Shown here piece after piece: positions 51,829-61,873 of a stretch of DNA of 64,000 bases. A program made the position numbers and the translations under genes. Position 1 is the first letter of the stretch, and the number at the start of each line of letters is the position of its first letter. This DNA is from Dendrobates tinctorius (lineage: Eukaryota): assembly GCF_039654945.1 (NCBI RefSeq), contig NW_027361974.1, positions 1,302,001-1,366,000 of the forward strand, written 5' to 3'. The notes beneath the pieces are model-generated. The model was not told the DNA's origin, did not search any database, and saw only the letters and a program-made list of their open reading frames with translations.

Positions 51829-51944
51829 TAGGATAAAAAAGATCGAGCCCTCGCTCCCTCAACTTCCAGCATCAGTGCGACCGATCCCCTAATGCTCCTT
51901 CTGATACAAACACCGATTCACCCCTCCCCCCAACCTCTGGTAAA

Positions 51945-52745
51945 TACACTGATCCACCCCCCACAACCCGTCTTACGGTACAGACACTGATCCACCCCCC
52001 ACAACCCGTCTTACGGTACAGACACTGATCCATCCATCCCCCCCCATCTTCCGATACAGACACTGATCCACCCCCCCCCCCATCTTCCGGTACAGACACT
52101 GATCCCCCCCCCCCCCCATCTTCCGGTACAGACACTGATCCCACCCCCCCCCCCATCTTCCGGTACAGACTCTGATCCATCCCCCCCATCTTCCGGTACA
52201 GACTCTGATCCATCCCCCCCATCTTCCGGTACAGACTCTGATCCATCCCCCCCATCTTCCGGTACAGACTCTGATCCATCCCCCCCCCCCCCATCTTCCG
52301 GTACAGACTCTGATCCATCCCCCCCCCCCCCATCTTCCGGTACAGACTCTGATCCATTCCCCCCCCCCCCCATCTTCCGGTACAGACTCTGATCCATCCC
52401 CCCCCCCCCCCCCCATCTTCCGGTACAGACTCTGATCCATCCCCCCCCCCCCCCCATCTTCCGGTACAGACTCTGATCCATCCCCCCCCCCCCCCATCTT
52501 CCGGTACAGACTCTGATCCATCCCCCCCCCCCCCCATCTTCCGGTACAGACTCTGATCCATCCCCCCCCCCCCCCCCATCTTCCGGTACAGACTCTGATC
52601 CATCCCCCCCCCCCCCCCCCCCCCCATCTTCCGGTACAGACTCTGATCCATCCCCCCCCATCTTCCGGTACAGAGTCTGTTCCATCCCCCCCATCTTCCG
52701 GTACAGAGTCTGTTCCATCTCTCCATCTTCCGGTACAGACACTGA
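51945..52745. repeat. Minisatellite CATCTTCCGGTACAGACTCTGATCCAT plus a variable poly-C tract
   Basis: Tandem units. Confidence 0.9.
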
Positions 52746-53279: not shown

Positions 53280-55815
53280 TAATAACGGGGCACAGCATGG
53301 CCCCATCTACTGTACAGGGTAATAACGGGGCACAGCACGGCCCCATCTACTGTACAGGGTAATAACGGGGCACAGCACGGCCCCATCCACTGCACGACGC
53401 GGGGTAATAACGGGGCACAGCACGGCCCCAGCCACTGTACGGCGCGGGGTAATAACGGGGCACAGCACGGCCCCAGCCACTGTACGGCGCGGGGTAATAA
53501 CGGGGCACAGCACGGCCCCAGCCACTGTACAGGGTAATAACGGGGCACAGCACGGCCCCAGCCACTGTACGGCGCGGGGTAATAACGGGGCACAGCACGG
53601 CCCCAGCCACTGTACGGCGCGGGGTAATAACGGGGCACAGCACGGCCCCAGCCACTGTACGGCGCGGGGTAATAACGGGGCACAGCACGGCCCCAGCCAC
53701 TGTACGGCGCGGGGTAATAACGGGGCACAGCACGGCCCCAGCCACTGTACGGCGCGGGGTAATAACGGGGCACAGCACGGCCCCAGCCACTGTACGGCGC
53801 GGGGTAATAACGGGGCACAGTACGGCCCCAGCCACTGTACGGCGCGGGGTAATAACGGGGCACAGTACGGCCCCAGCCACTGTACGGCGCGGGGTAATAA
53901 CGGGGCACAGTACGGCCCCAGCCACTGTACGGAGCGGGGTAATAACGGGGCACAGTACGGCCCCAGCCACTGTACGGCGCGGGGTAATAACGGGGCACAG
54001 TACGGCCCCAGCCACTGTACGGCGCGGGGTAATAACGGGGCACAGTACGGCCCCAGCCACTGTACGGCGCGGGGTAATAACGGGGCACAGTACGGCCCCA
54101 GCCACTGTACGGCGCGGGGTAATAACGGGGCACAGTACGGCCCCATCCACTGTACGGTGCGGGGTAATAACGGGGCACAGCACGGCCCCAGCCACTGTAC
54201 GGCGCGGGGTAATAACGGGGCACAGCACGGCTCCATCCACTGTACGGCGCGGGGTAATAACGGGGCACAGCACGGCCCCATCCACTGTACGGCGCGGGGT
54301 AATAACGGGGCACAGCACGGCCCCAGCCACTGTACGGCGCGGGGTAATAACGGGGCGGGGTAATAACGGGGCACAGCACGGCCCCAGCCACTGTACGGCG
54401 CGGGGTAATAACGGGGCACAGTACGGCCCCAGCCACTGTACGGCGCGGGGTAATAACGGGGCACAGTACGGCCCCAGCCACTGTACGGCGCGGGGTAATA
54501 ACGGGGCACAGTACGGCCCCAGCCACTGTACGGCGCGGGGTAATAACGGGGCACAGTACGGCCCCAGCCACTGTACGGCGCGGGGTAATAACGGGGCACA
54601 GTACGGCCCCAGCCACTGTACGGCGCGGGGTAATAACGGGGCACAGTACGGCCCCAGCCACTGTACGGCGCGGGGTAATAACGGGGCACAGCACGGCCCC
54701 AGCCACTGTACGGCGCGGGGTAATAACGGGGCACAGCACGGCCCCAGCCACTGTACGGTGCGGGGTAATAACGGGGCACAGCACGGCTCCATCCACTGTA
54801 CGGCGCGGGGTAATAACGGGGCACAGCACGGCTCCATCCACTGTACGGCGCGGGGTAATAACGGGGCACAGCACGGCCCCATCCACTGTACGGCGCGGGG
54901 TAATAACGGGGCACAGTACGGCCCCAGCCACTGTACGGCGCGGGGTAATAACGGGGCACAGCACGGCCCCATCCACTGTACGGCGCGGGGTAATAACGGG
55001 GCACAGTACGGCCCCAGCCACTGTACGGCGCGGGGTAATAACGGGGCACAGCACGGCCCCAGCCACTGTACGGCGCGGGGTAATAACGGGGCACAGCACG
55101 GCTCCATCCACTGTACGGCGCGGGGTAATAACGGGGCACAGTACGGCTCCATCCACTGTACGGCGCGGGGTAATAACGGGGCACAGTACGGCCCCATCCA
55201 CTGTACGGCGCGGGGTAATAACGGGGCACAGTACGGCCCCAGCCACTGTACGGCGCGGGGTAATAACGGGGCACAGCACGGCCCCAGCCACTGTACGGCG
55301 CGGGGTAATAACGGGGCACAGTACGGCCCCAGCCACTGTACGGTGCGGGGTAATAACGGGGCACAGTACGGCTCCAGCCACTGTACGGCGCGGGGTAATA
55401 ACGGGGCACAGCACGGCTCCATCCACTGTACGGCGCGGGGTAATAACGGGGCACAGTACGGCCCCAGCCACTGTACGGCGCGGGGTAATAACGGGGCACA
55501 GTACGGCCCCAGCCACTGTACGGCGCGGGGTAATAACGGGGCACAGTACGGCTCCAGCCACTGTACGGCGCGGGGTAATAACGGGGCACAGCACGGCTCC
55601 ATCCACTGTACGGCGCGGGGTAATAACGGGGCACAGTACGGCCCCAGCCACTGTACGGTGCGGGGTAATAACGGGGCACAGTACGGCTCCATCCACTGTA
55701 CGGCGCGGGGTAATAACGGGGCACAGTACGGCTCCATCCACTGTACGGCGCGGGGTAATAACGGGGCACAGCACAGCCCCAGCCACTGTACGGTGTGGGG
55801 TAATAACAGGGCACA
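53280..55815. repeat. 45-bp CpG-rich minisatellite (GGGGTAATAACGGGGCACAGYACGGCCCCAGCCACTGTACGGCGC), ~56 units, ANKRD27 intron 1
   Basis: Tandem units. Confidence 0.95.
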
Positions 55816-56205
55816 GAGGCAGCACTCTACAGTAGATGGGGCCACACTGTGCCTGCACCCTCCTGACAATTAGCCCATGGGGTTAAGCAGCCATTATCAC
55901 GGCTAGCTTCGCTGTGAACGGGTTAAGAAAGCGGTATTCCCCCCTCACTTATGCGGCTCTTTCCATTCACTTCCATGGTTGTGGCACAGCTACAACTAGC
56001 AGGACCAGAGAACTAAATGTCTGTGCATGCTGGGAGCTGTAGTGCTAAAACGCCACAGAGCCCTTGACCCCGCCCTTGGGACACCCTCTAGCACTGGGAC
56101 CACTTTGAATTTTGCTCCGTCACATGACCCTTAAAGTAACAGGTCACAAGCAGCCTAGAACAAAACAACAACCATTATCTAGAGAAGGAAAGTTCCCGTA
56201 CTCAC

Positions 56206-56460: not shown

Positions 56461-57148
56461 TGGAAAACGGATTTTTTTTATTTTGTAATAAAATAGGTTA
56501 AAATGAAGTATTTTCTCATGTATTTATGATGAGAGGAGTATTTATCATGGACAAAGTCAGATATAAGAATAGTGTATTATTTCAGTAGTCATTCTCACAA
56601 TCTGAGAGTAGGAGAGTAATAATTAAATCACTACTAAAAACTAAATGGAAGGGTGTTAGGAAAGGTATGCATTTGTATACATGCTTCAAGTGAAAAGTTG
56701 ACAGTGAGCCATTTTGCCCACAACAAAGATGGCGGCTGCAGCGTTATTCTGAGGCCTCATGCTCCCTCCTCTCTGGTGAGTGTTGTCCTCACGTGACTCC
56801 TGCAGGTGGTGACTATTCCAGGCTGTGCAGAGCTGAGAGCAGGATGTGTGGACAGCTCCAGGAGGATGCAAGAATGAAGATCTGTGGGATGGATGCAGTG
56901 GTAGACTTACGCCCTATTTAAAAGGAGATTATTGAGATTTGGAAATTTGCATCTGGAGATTTTTGTAGAACCAAAAAATAGCACTGACTATTGGATGCCC
57001 TGCAGACAGACCATTTTGTCCCTCCACTGCCAAAAGATGCAGAACTTCCAGGACATTCCCATAAATATCCTCTGGACGGAGTCCCATCCCCTCCTACGTG
57101 TTTGAGGGTTCCTCCGGTTTCCTCATCGCTTGGGATTGCAGGGTTGAG

Positions 57149-57865
57149 ATGTTGAAGGAGGAGGGCAAGGCGTTACTGGATGCTCTGAATAGGGTGACGG
57201 CATGCTACAGACATCTGGTCCTCACCATCGGTGGCACCTCCGACTCCCAAAACCTACGGGAAGAGCTGAAGAAGACTCGGCAGAAAGCCCAGGAGTTGGC
57301 GGTGGCCAATAGGAACAATCTGACCAGCACCCTCAAAGACACCAGTCTCAGCAAAGAGGACAAGGCTGAGTTTGAGAGGCTGTGGGTCATCTTCTCAACA
57401 TGCATGGACCTCCTAGAGACGGACATGAGACGAGCTCTGGAACTTGGGCATGAGTTCCCGTTAAACATCCCCAAAAAGCACCTCATACAGTCCGGCATGA
57501 GTGGTGGCACCTCAGGGGTGGCCGCCAGAGCCATGAGCGTCCAGACCATGAAATACGATGGGGATCACAACATAGATGTGATGGACCTCAAGGACCTGGA
57601 GAACGAGATCCGACTGGTGGATGAGATGATGCACGAGATGGAAATGAAAGTTGGGGTTCCTCAATGGACAGTGGAAGCCAAGCAGAACCCAGGGGCTGAA
57701 CTCAGGTGTGCGACCAGTGGCGGCGGGGCCTTGTCACCTGGCACCATATCTACAGACGAGCACAAGGCGATTTGTGATCTGAGTAGACTTTTGGCCGGGG
57801 TGGTCTTCAGTGCCGTCCTAATTATTGCCATCGTACTGGCCGTCTGTGTGGTCAAACTTTCATGA
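57149..57865 (+). CDS. RGS9BP: Regulator of G-protein signaling 9-binding protein (R9AP), 238 aa, intronless CDS
   Basis: [52 protein letters not shown]...EFERLWV...[14 protein letters not shown]...C-terminal [12 protein letters not shown]; synteny. Confidence 0.95.
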
Positions 57866-58902: not shown

Positions 58903-59307
58903 TCGAACACGCTGCTGTTTTGTAAATGTAGGAAGTTCTTCCGATTTAGAAACTGGGGGTCATGAACTGGGCACAGTTAGTTTTCTCGCTTTCTAATATA
59001 CAGTTTGTCAAAAATTTGTTCCCCAAGTTCTGATTTTGGAGGGTTGTGTGGGTGGGGGGTATGTTGTTGTTTTAACATGAGGCTCACTTGAGCTGTAGCC
59101 ACCCATATTTCAACATAAATGTTTTAGATATTTAATACGTCACTCACTATGTACCTTATATTTTTTAAAAGAGTCCTTTTTTTTTTTACAACTGTTTTCA
59201 ATTGCTTACATAGACATTCCCCTCCTGGGTTTCGGCACCAATTTTGTGAGGCCGTGCACAGGGGGTATCTAAATTAGTAATCCTTTGTTAACTCCCAAAT
59301 GCATTAA

Positions 59308-61828
59308 CCCTCCGTCAGGCGCAATAGATCTGACAGGCACACAGTAATTAGTTTCACTTCTCTCTCCTTGCCCACTTATCAGAAAACCCCACCCCTCCTA
59401 GTTATCTCCTGACTCTACAGGCTCTGTGAAACCTGATATCACAGTGACTCAGCAGACCTTCTAGTGAGCAGATATCAACACTTTGGCTTCTCAGGCACAT
59501 TGCGCCTGATTTCAACACAAATTGAAAGGTTAGTATTTTCTTTTTTTATTCATCACGATTGTGTATTTAGCTTGTTTTATGAAGGATTAATGCTAAGTTA
59601 GTGTACATAAGTACTGTTTTCTTAGACAAAAGGAGGGTGGCTTCTAAGGCACATTGCGCCCTAACACATACTCTTTCTCTCTTGCTTCAGATTTTCTGCT
59701 GCAATGGCCAGAAAACAGTATGATTCATCTAAACCCCTTCATTTAGAAGAAATGAAGATTTTTTTGTTAGAAGATGATGAGGAAGAACCAGCAGTAACTG
59801 AGGATTTAGAGGAATCTAGTGACATTTCATCTGAAGATGAGGTAGCAGAATGTAACACTGATTCTGGAACAGAGCAGGATGGTGATGACACTGATACAGA
59901 GGAAACAGACACAGATCTAGCTTATTATTTGGGCAAAGATAAAAATACAAAGTGGAACAAAAAGGCACCCAAGAACAAACAGCGCAGAGAATCCCACAAT
60001 ATTATTACACACCTTCCTGGAGTTATTGGAAGTGCTAGAAAAGCTAAAACTGCAGTAGAATGTTGGAGTAATCTAATTACAGATAGCATGTTGGAAACTA
60101 TTGTTCGGTTCACTAACCAGTATATTGACACAATCAAAGAGCAATTCTCCAGAGAGAGGGACATCAAAAACACTGATGTGATTGAACTCAAGGCATTTAT
60201 TGGCTTGTTATACCTAGCTGGTGCTTTCAGAGCAAATAGGCAAAGTTTGGAGGAGCTGTGGGGGACAGACGGTGATGGCATCGAAAAATTCAGCCTTGTG
60301 ATGAATCTGAAACGATTCAAAGTCCTGATCCGTTGCCTCCGTTTCGATGATCGAAGTACCCGGACAGAACGAAAAGGTTATGACCGGCTTGCACCAATTC
60401 AGGACATATTTCAACAATTTATTATGAATTGTCAAAAAAGCTATTGCCCGGGGCAAAACCTCACTATTGATGAGATGCTTCCAGGTTTCCGTGGAAGATG
60501 TGGTTTTCGGCAATATATACCATCAAAGCCAAACAAATATGGAATTAAAATTTTTGCCATGGTTGATGCAAGGATGATGTACACTATGAACATGGAAGTT
60601 TATTGTGGAAGACAGCCACCAGGTCCTTTCAATGTGAGCAACAAGCCTAGTGATGTGGTAAAGAGAATTGCTGAGCCAATGTTTGGATCTGGTCGAAATA
60701 TCACTGCTGACAACTGGTTTACTGACTTTGATCTGATTGATTTTTTAAAAACGAAAAAGCTGTCATATGTGGGAACTGTTAGAAAAAACAAAAGGCAGTT
60801 GCCGCCAGATTTTCTATATACAAAAGGCAAACAACAGTATAGCACTATGTTTGGGTTCAGTAATGGAAAGATTTTAGTTTCTTACATCCCACGCGAGAGG
60901 AAAAATGTGATTTTGGTCTCTTCATTACATAATGATTACACCATTGATCCAGAGTCTGGGGAGCTAAGGAAACCAGAAATCATAACTTTTTATAATTTGA
61001 CCAAAAGCGGCGTTGACACTGCTGACCAAATGTGTGGCAATTTCAATGTAAGTCGAAATACCAAACGCTGGCCGATGGTAATCTTCTTTACAATGCTGAA
61101 TGTGGGTGGCATCAACTCACAAGTAATTTACCTTGGTAATGAACTTAAACAAATGCGCAGAAGAATGTACCTAAAACAATTGGCTAATGAACTGGTGAGT
61201 GGAGAGCTAAGCCTAAGAAGTACAAAGACGGTTGGAATGCCCCTTGCCCTGCAACACCGGTTGAAGAGATATCGTCCCAAGGACGTTCCAGAACAAACAC
61301 CGACTCTACCACCTTCTAAAAGACGCAGTTGTACTACCTGCTCATTTGTATCTGGTTTTAGAAGGCTTTCTAAATATGACTGCAAAATATGTAAAGAATC
61401 AATCTGCCTTTCCCATGCAACTTTCGTCTGCCAGCCTTGCTTTTCTAAGTGTACCTGTGCTGCTTCTGCTGCAATTGAAACCACTGAAGATGAGTAGAAA
61501 ATAATTAAGTAACATCTAAGTGCAATATCCTTTAAGTTTTTTCCATAATTTTATATTTAAGCAATAGTTAAGTAAAGATAACTGGAGCCTATTTGGCGGT
61601 ACTACCGAAAAGTGGTACTTTTAGTTTTAATAAGTTTATGGTTAATAAATTTTTTTTTTTGCATCTGATTTGGTGTAATCTCTTTTAATACATTCCTATG
61701 AAGGTCACTGACTACTTCTATAGTCCTGAAATTGAAATATGTAGCTACTATAGGTGGTTTTCTGACCTGTGCTTGTCAGGCACATTGCGCATGAACTGAG
61801 GAGAATCTATATTGCGCCTGACGGAGGG
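59308..61828 (+). mobile_element. Full-length autonomous-type piggyBac transposon (2,521 bp)
   Basis: TTAA TSDs 59304-59307 and 61829-61832; perfect 19-bp TIR CCCTCCGTCAGGCGCAATA; subterminal inverted repeat CTGACARGCACA; single intact ORF. Confidence 0.95.
59704..61497 (+). CDS. piggyBac transposase (DDD), 597 aa, intact
   Basis: Acidic N-terminus; TIDEM..FRGRC.FRQYIPSKPNKYGIK, TADNWFT and YN.TK.GVDTADQ catalytic motifs; C-terminal CxxC...CxxC-x4-CxxH-x4-CxxC domain. Confidence 0.95.
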   Translation: MARKQYDSSKPLHLEEMKIFLLEDDEEEPAVTEDLEESSDISSEDEVAECNTDSGTEQDGDDTDTEETDTDLAYYLGKDKNTKWNKKAPKNKQRRESHNIITHLPGVIGSARKAKTAVECWSNLITDSMLETIVRFTNQYIDTIKEQFSRERDIKNTDVIELKAFIGLLYLAGAFRANRQSLEELWGTDGDGIEKFSLVMNLKRFKVLIRCLRFDDRSTRTERKGYDRLAPIQDIFQQFIMNCQKSYCPGQNLTIDEMLPGFRGRCGFRQYIPSKPNKYGIKIFAMVDARMMYTMNMEVYCGRQPPGPFNVSNKPSDVVKRIAEPMFGSGRNITADNWFTDFDLIDFLKTKKLSYVGTVRKNKRQLPPDFLYTKGKQQYSTMFGFSNGKILVSYIPRERKNVILVSSLHNDYTIDPESGELRKPEIITFYNLTKSGVDTADQMCGNFNVSRNTKRWPMVIFFTMLNVGGINSQVIYLGNELKQMRRRMYLKQLANELVSGELSLRSTKTVGMPLALQHRLKRYRPKDVPEQTPTLPPSKRRSCTTCSFVSGFRRLSKYDCKICKESICLSHATFVCQPCFSKCTCAASAAIETTEDE

Positions 61829-61873
61829 TTAAAAACGTATACGTTATAGAGAAATTGAAACCTACTTTTTTTA

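Follow-up and report, generated by a model that had tools for sequence, protein, structure and literature searches.

Tetrapods have, to our knowledge, few DNA transposons whose present mobility is demonstrated or plausible, and among vertebrates only a handful of piggyBac elements are known to be active (piggyBat, Uribo2 and Teratorn of medaka). In the T. ni piggyBac, bp 34-63 of the right end are nearly the same as bp 7-35 of the left end, and a dimer of the Cys-rich domain (CRD) sits on a 19-bp palindrome-like repeat (PMC7351741). We analyzed a stretch of 64,000 nucleotides from the poison frog Dendrobates tinctorius (contig NW_027361974.1 of assembly GCF_039654945.1, positions 1,302,001 to 1,366,000 of the forward strand; hereafter the window), in which an earlier sequence-only reading had proposed an apparently intact and potentially active piggyBac transposon. 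Our results indicate that this element is very probably a full-length autonomous member of a very young dendrobatid piggyBac family, which would have transposed during roughly the past 1-2 million years and probably remains mobile. The family itself may be new: a literature search for a dendrobatid piggyBac family found no paper describing it, and the apparent mentions of piggyBac in several poison-frog papers proved to be the word 'piggyback'. Its superfamily, end layout and transposase type are already known.

The element shares with T. ni piggyBac (6x67/6x68; PMC7351741) a TTAA target, terminal inverted repeats (TIRs) tipped with CCC/GGG, an aligned triad of aspartates (DDD), a cross-brace Cys/His C-terminal domain, a subterminal repeat lying 3 bp from the left TIR and ~30 bp from the right one, a right end that is a shifted second copy of the left inner segment, and a 19-bp near-palindromic internal repeat. 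As the sequence-only reading had stated, TTAA stands on both sides and the 19-bp TIRs are free of mismatches: the 23-nt arms 59304-59326 and 61810-61832, TTAA included, are 100% complementary, and the 19-mer terminal repeat has only these two sites in the window, against 0 expected by chance. The asymmetric, T. ni-like end layout also held, with a subterminal inverted repeat that matches at 11 of 12 positions, spacers of 3 bp and 30 bp, and a right end in which bp 8-34 of the left end recur (21/27 by eye) shifted 27 bp inward. The 13-mer AGGCACATTGCGC was recovered at all three places named for it, 59493, 59647 and 61778, each time on the plus strand and with 0.07 expected; within the first internal motif copy, the inner 11 nt of the terminal repeat recur in inverted orientation, and the near-palindrome of this motif copy matches at 16/19 positions by eye. 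The two elements differ in their proteins, which are only 36% identical, in the length of the TIR (19 bp in the frog, 13 bp in T. ni), in the extra motif copies that the frog element carries ~190 and ~345 bp inside its left end, and in the vertebrate host and spliced intron in the 5' untranslated region (5'-UTR) of the frog element, with an acceptor just before the ATG. We know of no such 5'-UTR intron in T. ni piggyBac.

Among amphibians, TxpB/Uribo2 of Xenopus, said to have been described by Hikosaka et al. in 2007, is a piggyBac that reportedly has intact copies and signs of recent mobility. Its terminal-repeat sequence appears to differ from that of the D. tinctorius element. No Xenopus-named protein was present among the 120 best homologues of the D. 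tinctorius transposase, most of which carry no source name. PiggyBat of Myotis lucifugus (9c0f; PMC11707139) is likewise a young multi-copy tetrapod family with an intact transposase and non-autonomous derivatives, but its lineage is a distant one, with 23% identity when the folds are aligned. Its activity has been shown experimentally, whereas that of the frog family is predicted.

The 597-aa open reading frame (ORF) of the element matched Pfam DDE_Tnp_1_7 (PF13843) with an E value of 6e-75. Among solved structures, the sequence was closest to 6x67, the transposase of T. ni piggyBac (E 6e-90), with piggyBat second (E 5e-36), and the AlphaFold model (pLDDT 79.9, with only moderate confidence in the CRD) also retrieved 6x67 as its top PDB match (E 2e-36, TM 0.81, 36% identity), then piggyBat and then Tn5. 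The three catalytic aspartates picked out earlier, D256, D336 and D438, lie opposite T. ni D268, D346 and D447 in the 6x67 alignment, which extends to the last residue of the T. ni CRD and thus bears out the claim of a complete Cys/His domain at the C terminus. Across 33 homologues with 43-70% identity, the second Asp, D441 and eight Cys/His residues (seven Cys, one His) are invariant, and the other two catalytic Asp are kept in 32 of the 33. The TTAA target, CCC...GGG TIRs, DDE_Tnp_1_7 triad, CRD and asymmetric ends are together those of an autonomous-type member of the piggyBac superfamily, which the element is predicted to be.

A quick maximum-likelihood tree grouped the family with a second dendrobatid clade (Ranitomeya, Phyllobates) and a grasshopper element, with Hydra, orthopteran, beetle and marine sequences nearby and the branching among them not resolved; outside dendrobatids, identity was at most 67% among the 120 best homologues. 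We compared the ends with those of elements from Schistocerca nitens, a Tara Oceans marine metagenome and Logan contig L079, whose transposases are only 65-67% identical to that of the frog. Nearly the same terminal repeat, TTAA CCCTCCGTC[A/G]GGCGCAA, was found in the grasshopper, marine and Logan relatives, and the position of the left subterminal CTGACAGGCACA is kept at this distance. The frog, marine and grasshopper elements each have an [AG]TTGCGC core at position 196, and L079 has one at ~197; a second core at ~349 is present in the grasshopper and Logan elements but absent there in the marine one, and cores 48 and 21 nt from the right end are found in the frog, marine and grasshopper elements. 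The splice donor and an acceptor 12-13 nt before the ATG are also common to the frog element and these relatives, and a paralogue of 70% identity in R. imitator retains both the motifs and the splice sites. The conservation of non-coding positions at 65-67% protein identity argues for their function. Searches of JGI metagenomes for the terminal-repeat pattern gave no exact match, and neither this pattern nor the protein profile had a match in the viral contigs of IMG/VR, which are mostly from phages and so are little informative.

We then examined the family in the D. tinctorius genome. The exact 23-nt end (TTAA plus terminal repeat) occurs 1215 times (596 forward, 619 reverse), compared with 0 for the reversed control, and a 38-mer around the second Asp has 269 matches; the genome thus holds about 270 ORF-bearing copies. 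The 597-aa frame is uninterrupted in 67 of the 73 best protein matches, with one stop in each of the other six, so that at least 67 open-frame copies exist: the description of the window copy as the intact element here was right as to its open frame, but it is not a lone survivor. Among the 30 best DNA matches, 27 have an intact ORF and 28 have both exact terminal repeats (TTAA on both sides in at least 25 of these 28), and the flanks differ from copy to copy except in one pair, probably a haplotig or duplication. A check of copy number and identity across the genome, which the sequence-only reading had called for, revealed hundreds of near-identical copies.

Much of the family consists of shorter elements. 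When 37 elements were paired by hand from the first 100 listed ends, 8 were ~2530 bp long, 18 were ~1.2 kb, 5 were ~1.4 kb and 6 were of other lengths. The 1.21-kb derivative consists of element positions 1-649, GA and positions 1970-2529, and its junction 34-mer occurs 503 times, dispersed across the genome; a TTAA duplication with different flanks was found in 15 of the 15 derivative or disrupted copies that were fetched. A single deletion derivative at ~500 unrelated TTAA sites would be reached only through repeated mobilisation in trans, and we regard it as the strongest indirect evidence that the family transposase worked in this lineage. A minority of copies have other tetranucleotides, which suggests occasional non-canonical target use: identical non-TTAA flanks were CTAA/CTAA (L062 and L069), TTTA/TTTA (L074) and TTAG/TTAG (L016), L031, a copy from R. 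imitator, has CTAG on both sides, and on the right side only, CTAG was seen in L071 and L075 and ATAA in L070. In three further copies (L053, L054 and L055), other repeats have inserted into the piggyBac and split it by 1.4-6.9 kb, which points to later activity of other elements.

The mean pairwise divergence of the 30 best copies in a MAFFT alignment was 0.30% (range 0-0.63%), and the window copy differs from the others of this set by 0.24-0.44%. At the rate of 1e-9 substitutions per site per year used for poison frogs (PMC6278860), a divergence of 0.30% would correspond to about 1.5 million years, and the two private substitutions of the window copy to roughly 0.8 million years, both with a wide error. 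The density of variable sites was 3.0% in the ORF and 3.3% outside it, and the nonsynonymous to synonymous ratio was ~3:1, with counts of 25:8 for singletons and of 13:6, with one additional stop, for variants shared between copies. The equal density and the ratio of ~3:1 indicate the neutral decay of transposon copies rather than the constraint of a conserved host gene.

Evidence of transcription came from assembled contigs aligned to the window, above all those of run X15 from D. tinctorius. In one of these contigs, 59526 is connected to 59689 at a GT..AG joint (cut +2), so that a 162-nt intron is removed, and no X15 contig covers 59304-59381 or 59572-59683. From this joint we conclude that the contigs represent RNA and that transcription of the element takes place. 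The X15 contigs also include the junctions of the 1.21-kb and 1.42-kb derivatives. In another contig, 255 foreign letters run up to 59691, where the sequence downstream of the acceptor starts, and in a third, 29 foreign letters stand just before 59382; relatives show a similar pyrimidine tract plus CAG near the latter position, which may be a second acceptor. The cluster of the closest proteins contains R. imitator entries and two D. tinctorius entries named 'SERAC1 isoform X2/X3'. The D. tinctorius protein XP_073417112.1 matches the genome at 100%, and the model XP_073417111.1 starts with MK-FSAA-MARKQ, in which a host exon has been spliced at the acceptor and reads in frame into the 13 nt that precede the ATG. 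Together with the spliced joint, the chimeric X15 contig and XP_073417111.1 indicate that the ORF is reached both from the element's own 5' exon and from upstream host exons. A transposase copy at C309:3065355-3067145 is among those labelled 'protein SERAC1 isoform X2/X3 [Dendrobates tinctorius]', the X2 model opening with a host exon in frame with the element, a mis-annotation attributable to exon trapping; NCBI's automatic label for other copies is 'PGBD4-like'. PGBD3 in the human CSB gene, said to have been reported by Newman et al. in 2008, is reportedly a natural exon trap of this kind. There too, a 3' splice site immediately upstream of the ORF lets host exons splice in frame, but PGBD3 is old, fixed and domesticated, whereas in the frog the acceptor is part of a young family, and relatives in other phyla have kept it.

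Several observations weigh against a family that is still mobile and a window copy that is fully functional. The window copy differs from the family majority by two private substitutions, a synonymous one at 61359 and a change from CGG to CAG at 60401, which replaces Arg-233 by Gln (R233Q). All 29 other copies encode arginine at this codon, as do the contigs from organisms B, C and D; the residue is also found in every R. imitator and D. tinctorius protein and in 32 of 32 distant homologues. The codon aligns with T. ni R245 in the 6x67 alignment, and position 245 is among those picked in T. ni to weaken target-DNA binding (PMC8642419), so that the window copy's own enzyme may be impaired, with poor integration. 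Together with the perfect ends, the change at an invariant Arg suggests a copy that is cis-competent, and thus predicted to be mobilisable in trans by transposase from other copies, but whose own product may work poorly. The claim of an intact 597-aa ORF hence holds in that no stop interrupts 59704-61497, and needs qualifying at codon 233; likewise, what had been called a recent, competent element is recent at the family level, while competence cannot be asserted for this copy. In addition, an intact ORF was found in only 4 of 20 copies sampled outside the best-matching set, and much of the family is already decaying. These 20 ORF-bearing copies are 99.0-99.6% identical to the window copy, and this identity together with their few intact ORFs indicates a spread of ages, with the window copy in the youngest layer. 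Finally, X15 is a presumed RNA run, its status as RNA resting on the spliced joint.

These points would be accommodated if the family had amplified recently and were now immobile, through host silencing or the loss of the fully active source copy. The older copies are mostly broken (16 of 20 in the unselected sample) and the window copy is altered at an invariant Arg, as this explanation would lead one to expect. It fits less well with the at least 67 open frames that persist, with pairs of copies as close as 0.00%, with spliced mRNA in presumed RNA contigs from several studies, and with perfect ends at ~1200 sites. We therefore consider recent immobilisation rather unlikely, though a serious contender, and prefer a family that is probably still mobile.

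The locus itself was informative about the timing of insertion. Each of the two flanks of the window copy is single-copy in the genome, and in run X10, from a related species (organism B), a 1482-nt contig of depth 8 includes the two flanks and passes from 59303 straight to 61829; the 2525 nt between them are missing, and the junction is a shared 4-nt TTAA. The flanks in this contig show 22 substitutions in ~700 bases (~3.2%). The single-TTAA orthologous site in the related species demonstrates that the insertion at the window locus is lineage-specific. The same run carries the element at a depth of ~1270; its dominant form differs from the D. tinctorius majority at ~1 site in 2400 nt, the remaining differences from the window being sites where the window copy is the odd one out. 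Organisms C (DNA) and D also carry the element at 99% identity or more; over R. imitator and organisms B, C and D, the identities span 99.4-99.9%. In the R. imitator assembly GCA_032444005.1, we found two copies with perfect terminal repeats and TTAA that are 99.4% identical to the window copy, and a search of the D. tinctorius genome with 800 bp of unique flank from the R. imitator copies (L084) returned no match and no orthologue. The full-length copies L084 and L085 lie 26 kb apart on CM064359.1 and have identical flanks (99.7% over 4.2 kb), which indicates a local segmental duplication containing the element rather than two insertions. The CTAG-flanked junction of the R. imitator insertion L031 is also absent from the D. 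tinctorius genome, as would be expected of a different species; the flanks of L031 are other high-copy repeats that are uninformative for orthology. Tc1-like repeats beside it (L031:1760-2595 and L031:5128-5940) have thousands of D. tinctorius matches at 97-99% identity and are a second transposon family nearly unchanged between Dendrobates and Ranitomeya.

The element is far more alike between species than the DNA around it, and its copies show no selection, which points to recent horizontal transfer or introgression; such movement among dendrobatids is likely. The near-identity between genera could also reflect vertical descent from the ancestor of Dendrobates and Ranitomeya with slow evolution, given that the frog lineages of the clade cluster together in the protein tree, that the R. 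imitator copies have shared substitutions of their own and that substitution rates in frogs are low. Under this scenario, the element of organism B should not differ from the D. tinctorius majority at as little as ~1 site in 2400 nt when orthologous flanks differ by ~3.2%, nor should R. imitator copies be 99.4% identical while their 800 bp of unique flank goes unmatched, and copies without purifying selection could hardly have kept their non-coding parts constant. Vertical descent seems to us an unlikely account, and horizontal transfer or introgression is preferred.

A domesticated, piggyBac-derived host gene ('PGBD4-like') would also have an open frame, expression and the NCBI label that these copies carry. 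It would not explain why copies bearing terminal repeats and TTAA duplications occupy unrelated loci by the hundreds, a locus that is empty in related species B, or a neutral substitution pattern, and we rule it out, as virtually without chance, on copy number and the empty site. The single orthologous copy with dN/dS << 1 that had been named as the mark of domestication is not what we found, since there are ~270 ORF-bearing copies and the pattern is neutral. An assembly artefact or contamination, for example with a vector piggyBac, is just as improbable and is rejected on the divergence from T. ni piggyBac (only 36% identity), the unique frog flanks of each copy, and the independent data, since runs of 8 different studies contain the element and so does another assembly, GCA_032444005.1; nothing specific speaks in favour of an artefact.

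The coordinates of the features are collected in Table 1. With regard to the likely polyadenylation signal listed there, X15 contigs continue past it to 61828.

Table 1. Features of the piggyBac element in the D. tinctorius window (window coordinates)
Feature	Position	Strand	Basis or remark
Whole element	59304-61832		2529 bp
Left TTAA target-site duplication	59304-59307	+	Sequence; single TTAA at the empty orthologous site in related species B
Left 19-bp terminal inverted repeat, CCC... tip	59308-59326	+	Inverted-repeat comparison
Left subterminal repeat CTGACAGGCACA	59330-59341	+	3 bp inward of the terminal repeat
Tract of pyrimidines with CAG at its end, possibly an upstream splice acceptor or the point where the transcribed part starts	59351-59382	+	Inferred
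Non-coding 5' exon	59383-59528	+	X15 contig spans 59382-59526, then joins the coding exon
Internal motif copy 1, candidate transposase (CRD) binding site	59486-59509	+	Holds the 19-bp near-palindrome 59491-59509
5'-UTR intron, GT..AG, 162 nt	59529-59690	+	X15 contig joint; donor and acceptor conserved in relatives
Internal motif copy 2, within the intron	59640-59663	+	Grasshopper element and L079 also have it at ~349
Transposase ORF, 597 aa plus stop	59704-61497	+	ORF call, Pfam, structure match
Codon 233 CAG (Gln), private change; CGG (Arg) in all other copies examined	60400-60402	+	
Span of catalytic Asp codons: D256 (60469-71), D336 (60709-11), D438 (61015-17)	60469-61017	+	
Cys-rich C-terminal domain (C543, C546, C560, C563, C568, H571, C576, C579)	61330-61440	+	
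AATAAA, likely polyadenylation signal (inferred)	61644-61649	+	X17 contig stops at 61650
Right subterminal block	61768-61794	+	Motif copy 3 (61771-61794) and the inverted repeat (61768-61779) overlap
Right 19-bp terminal inverted repeat	61810-61828	-	Inverted-repeat comparison
Right TTAA target-site duplication	61829-61832	+	Sequence

On this anatomy, the following course may be proposed. A dimer of the DDD (RNase-H-fold) transposase would bind the terminal repeats, while the Cys-rich domain, by analogy with T. ni piggyBac and from conservation, would bind the repeated motif TCAGGC(A/G)C(A)ATTGCGC, of which one copy lies by the left tip, two at the right end and two deeper within the left end. 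A T. ni-like sequence of events would follow, in which the synaptic complex is asymmetric, excision goes through hairpins and integration is specific to TTAA. Expression of the ORF would rely on splicing, both of a short non-coding exon to the ORF exon and, in exon trapping, of host exons to the acceptor that lies 13 nt ahead of the ATG. The fullest version of this picture, which we offer tentatively as a possibility, is that the family is still mobile, has spread horizontally between dendrobatid genera in about the last million years and is expressed through an exon-trap module that spans phyla, this module consisting of a non-coding exon, an intron with a motif resembling a transposase-binding site and an acceptor 13 nt before the ATG.

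Elsewhere in the window there are two minisatellites, one with a C-rich unit of 33-40 bp in ~20 copies and the other with a 45-bp unit (135-bp higher-order unit) in ~56 copies matching at 92-94%; the arrays lie at 51921-52717 and 53280-55816, and the second minisatellite contains stop-free ORFs of ~840 aa in all three minus-strand frames. A 255-aa ORF at 57098-57865 gave a Syntaxin_2 match below the cut-off (E 1e-4, 22.7 bits vs 26.5), which is probably not meaningful. An Rfam scan of the 56-64 kb part of the window gave no matches.

The suggestion that the element is a candidate gene-transfer tool is supported, for the family, by the near-identical copies, the amplified derivative, the empty TTAA site and the spliced transcripts. 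If the fullest version of the picture is true, a transposase with the natural Arg-233, together with the ends, would work as a vertebrate-native gene-transfer system. The family appears to be among the better candidates for a vertebrate DNA transposon that is still mobile, and with its dozens of open-frame copies, an amplified non-autonomous partner and conserved ends that point to the required cis-sequences, assays could easily be designed. Near-identity between genera whose unique DNA has diverged by at least 3% also makes it a clean test case for horizontal transfer in vertebrates. Earlier evidence indicated that poison-frog genomes have been growing through repeated invasion by new transposons (PMC6278860), and the near-identity across genera fits this picture of invasion. 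Finally, the conserved intron and acceptor suggest how the ORFs of piggyBac elements may become fused to host genes, a route to their domestication.

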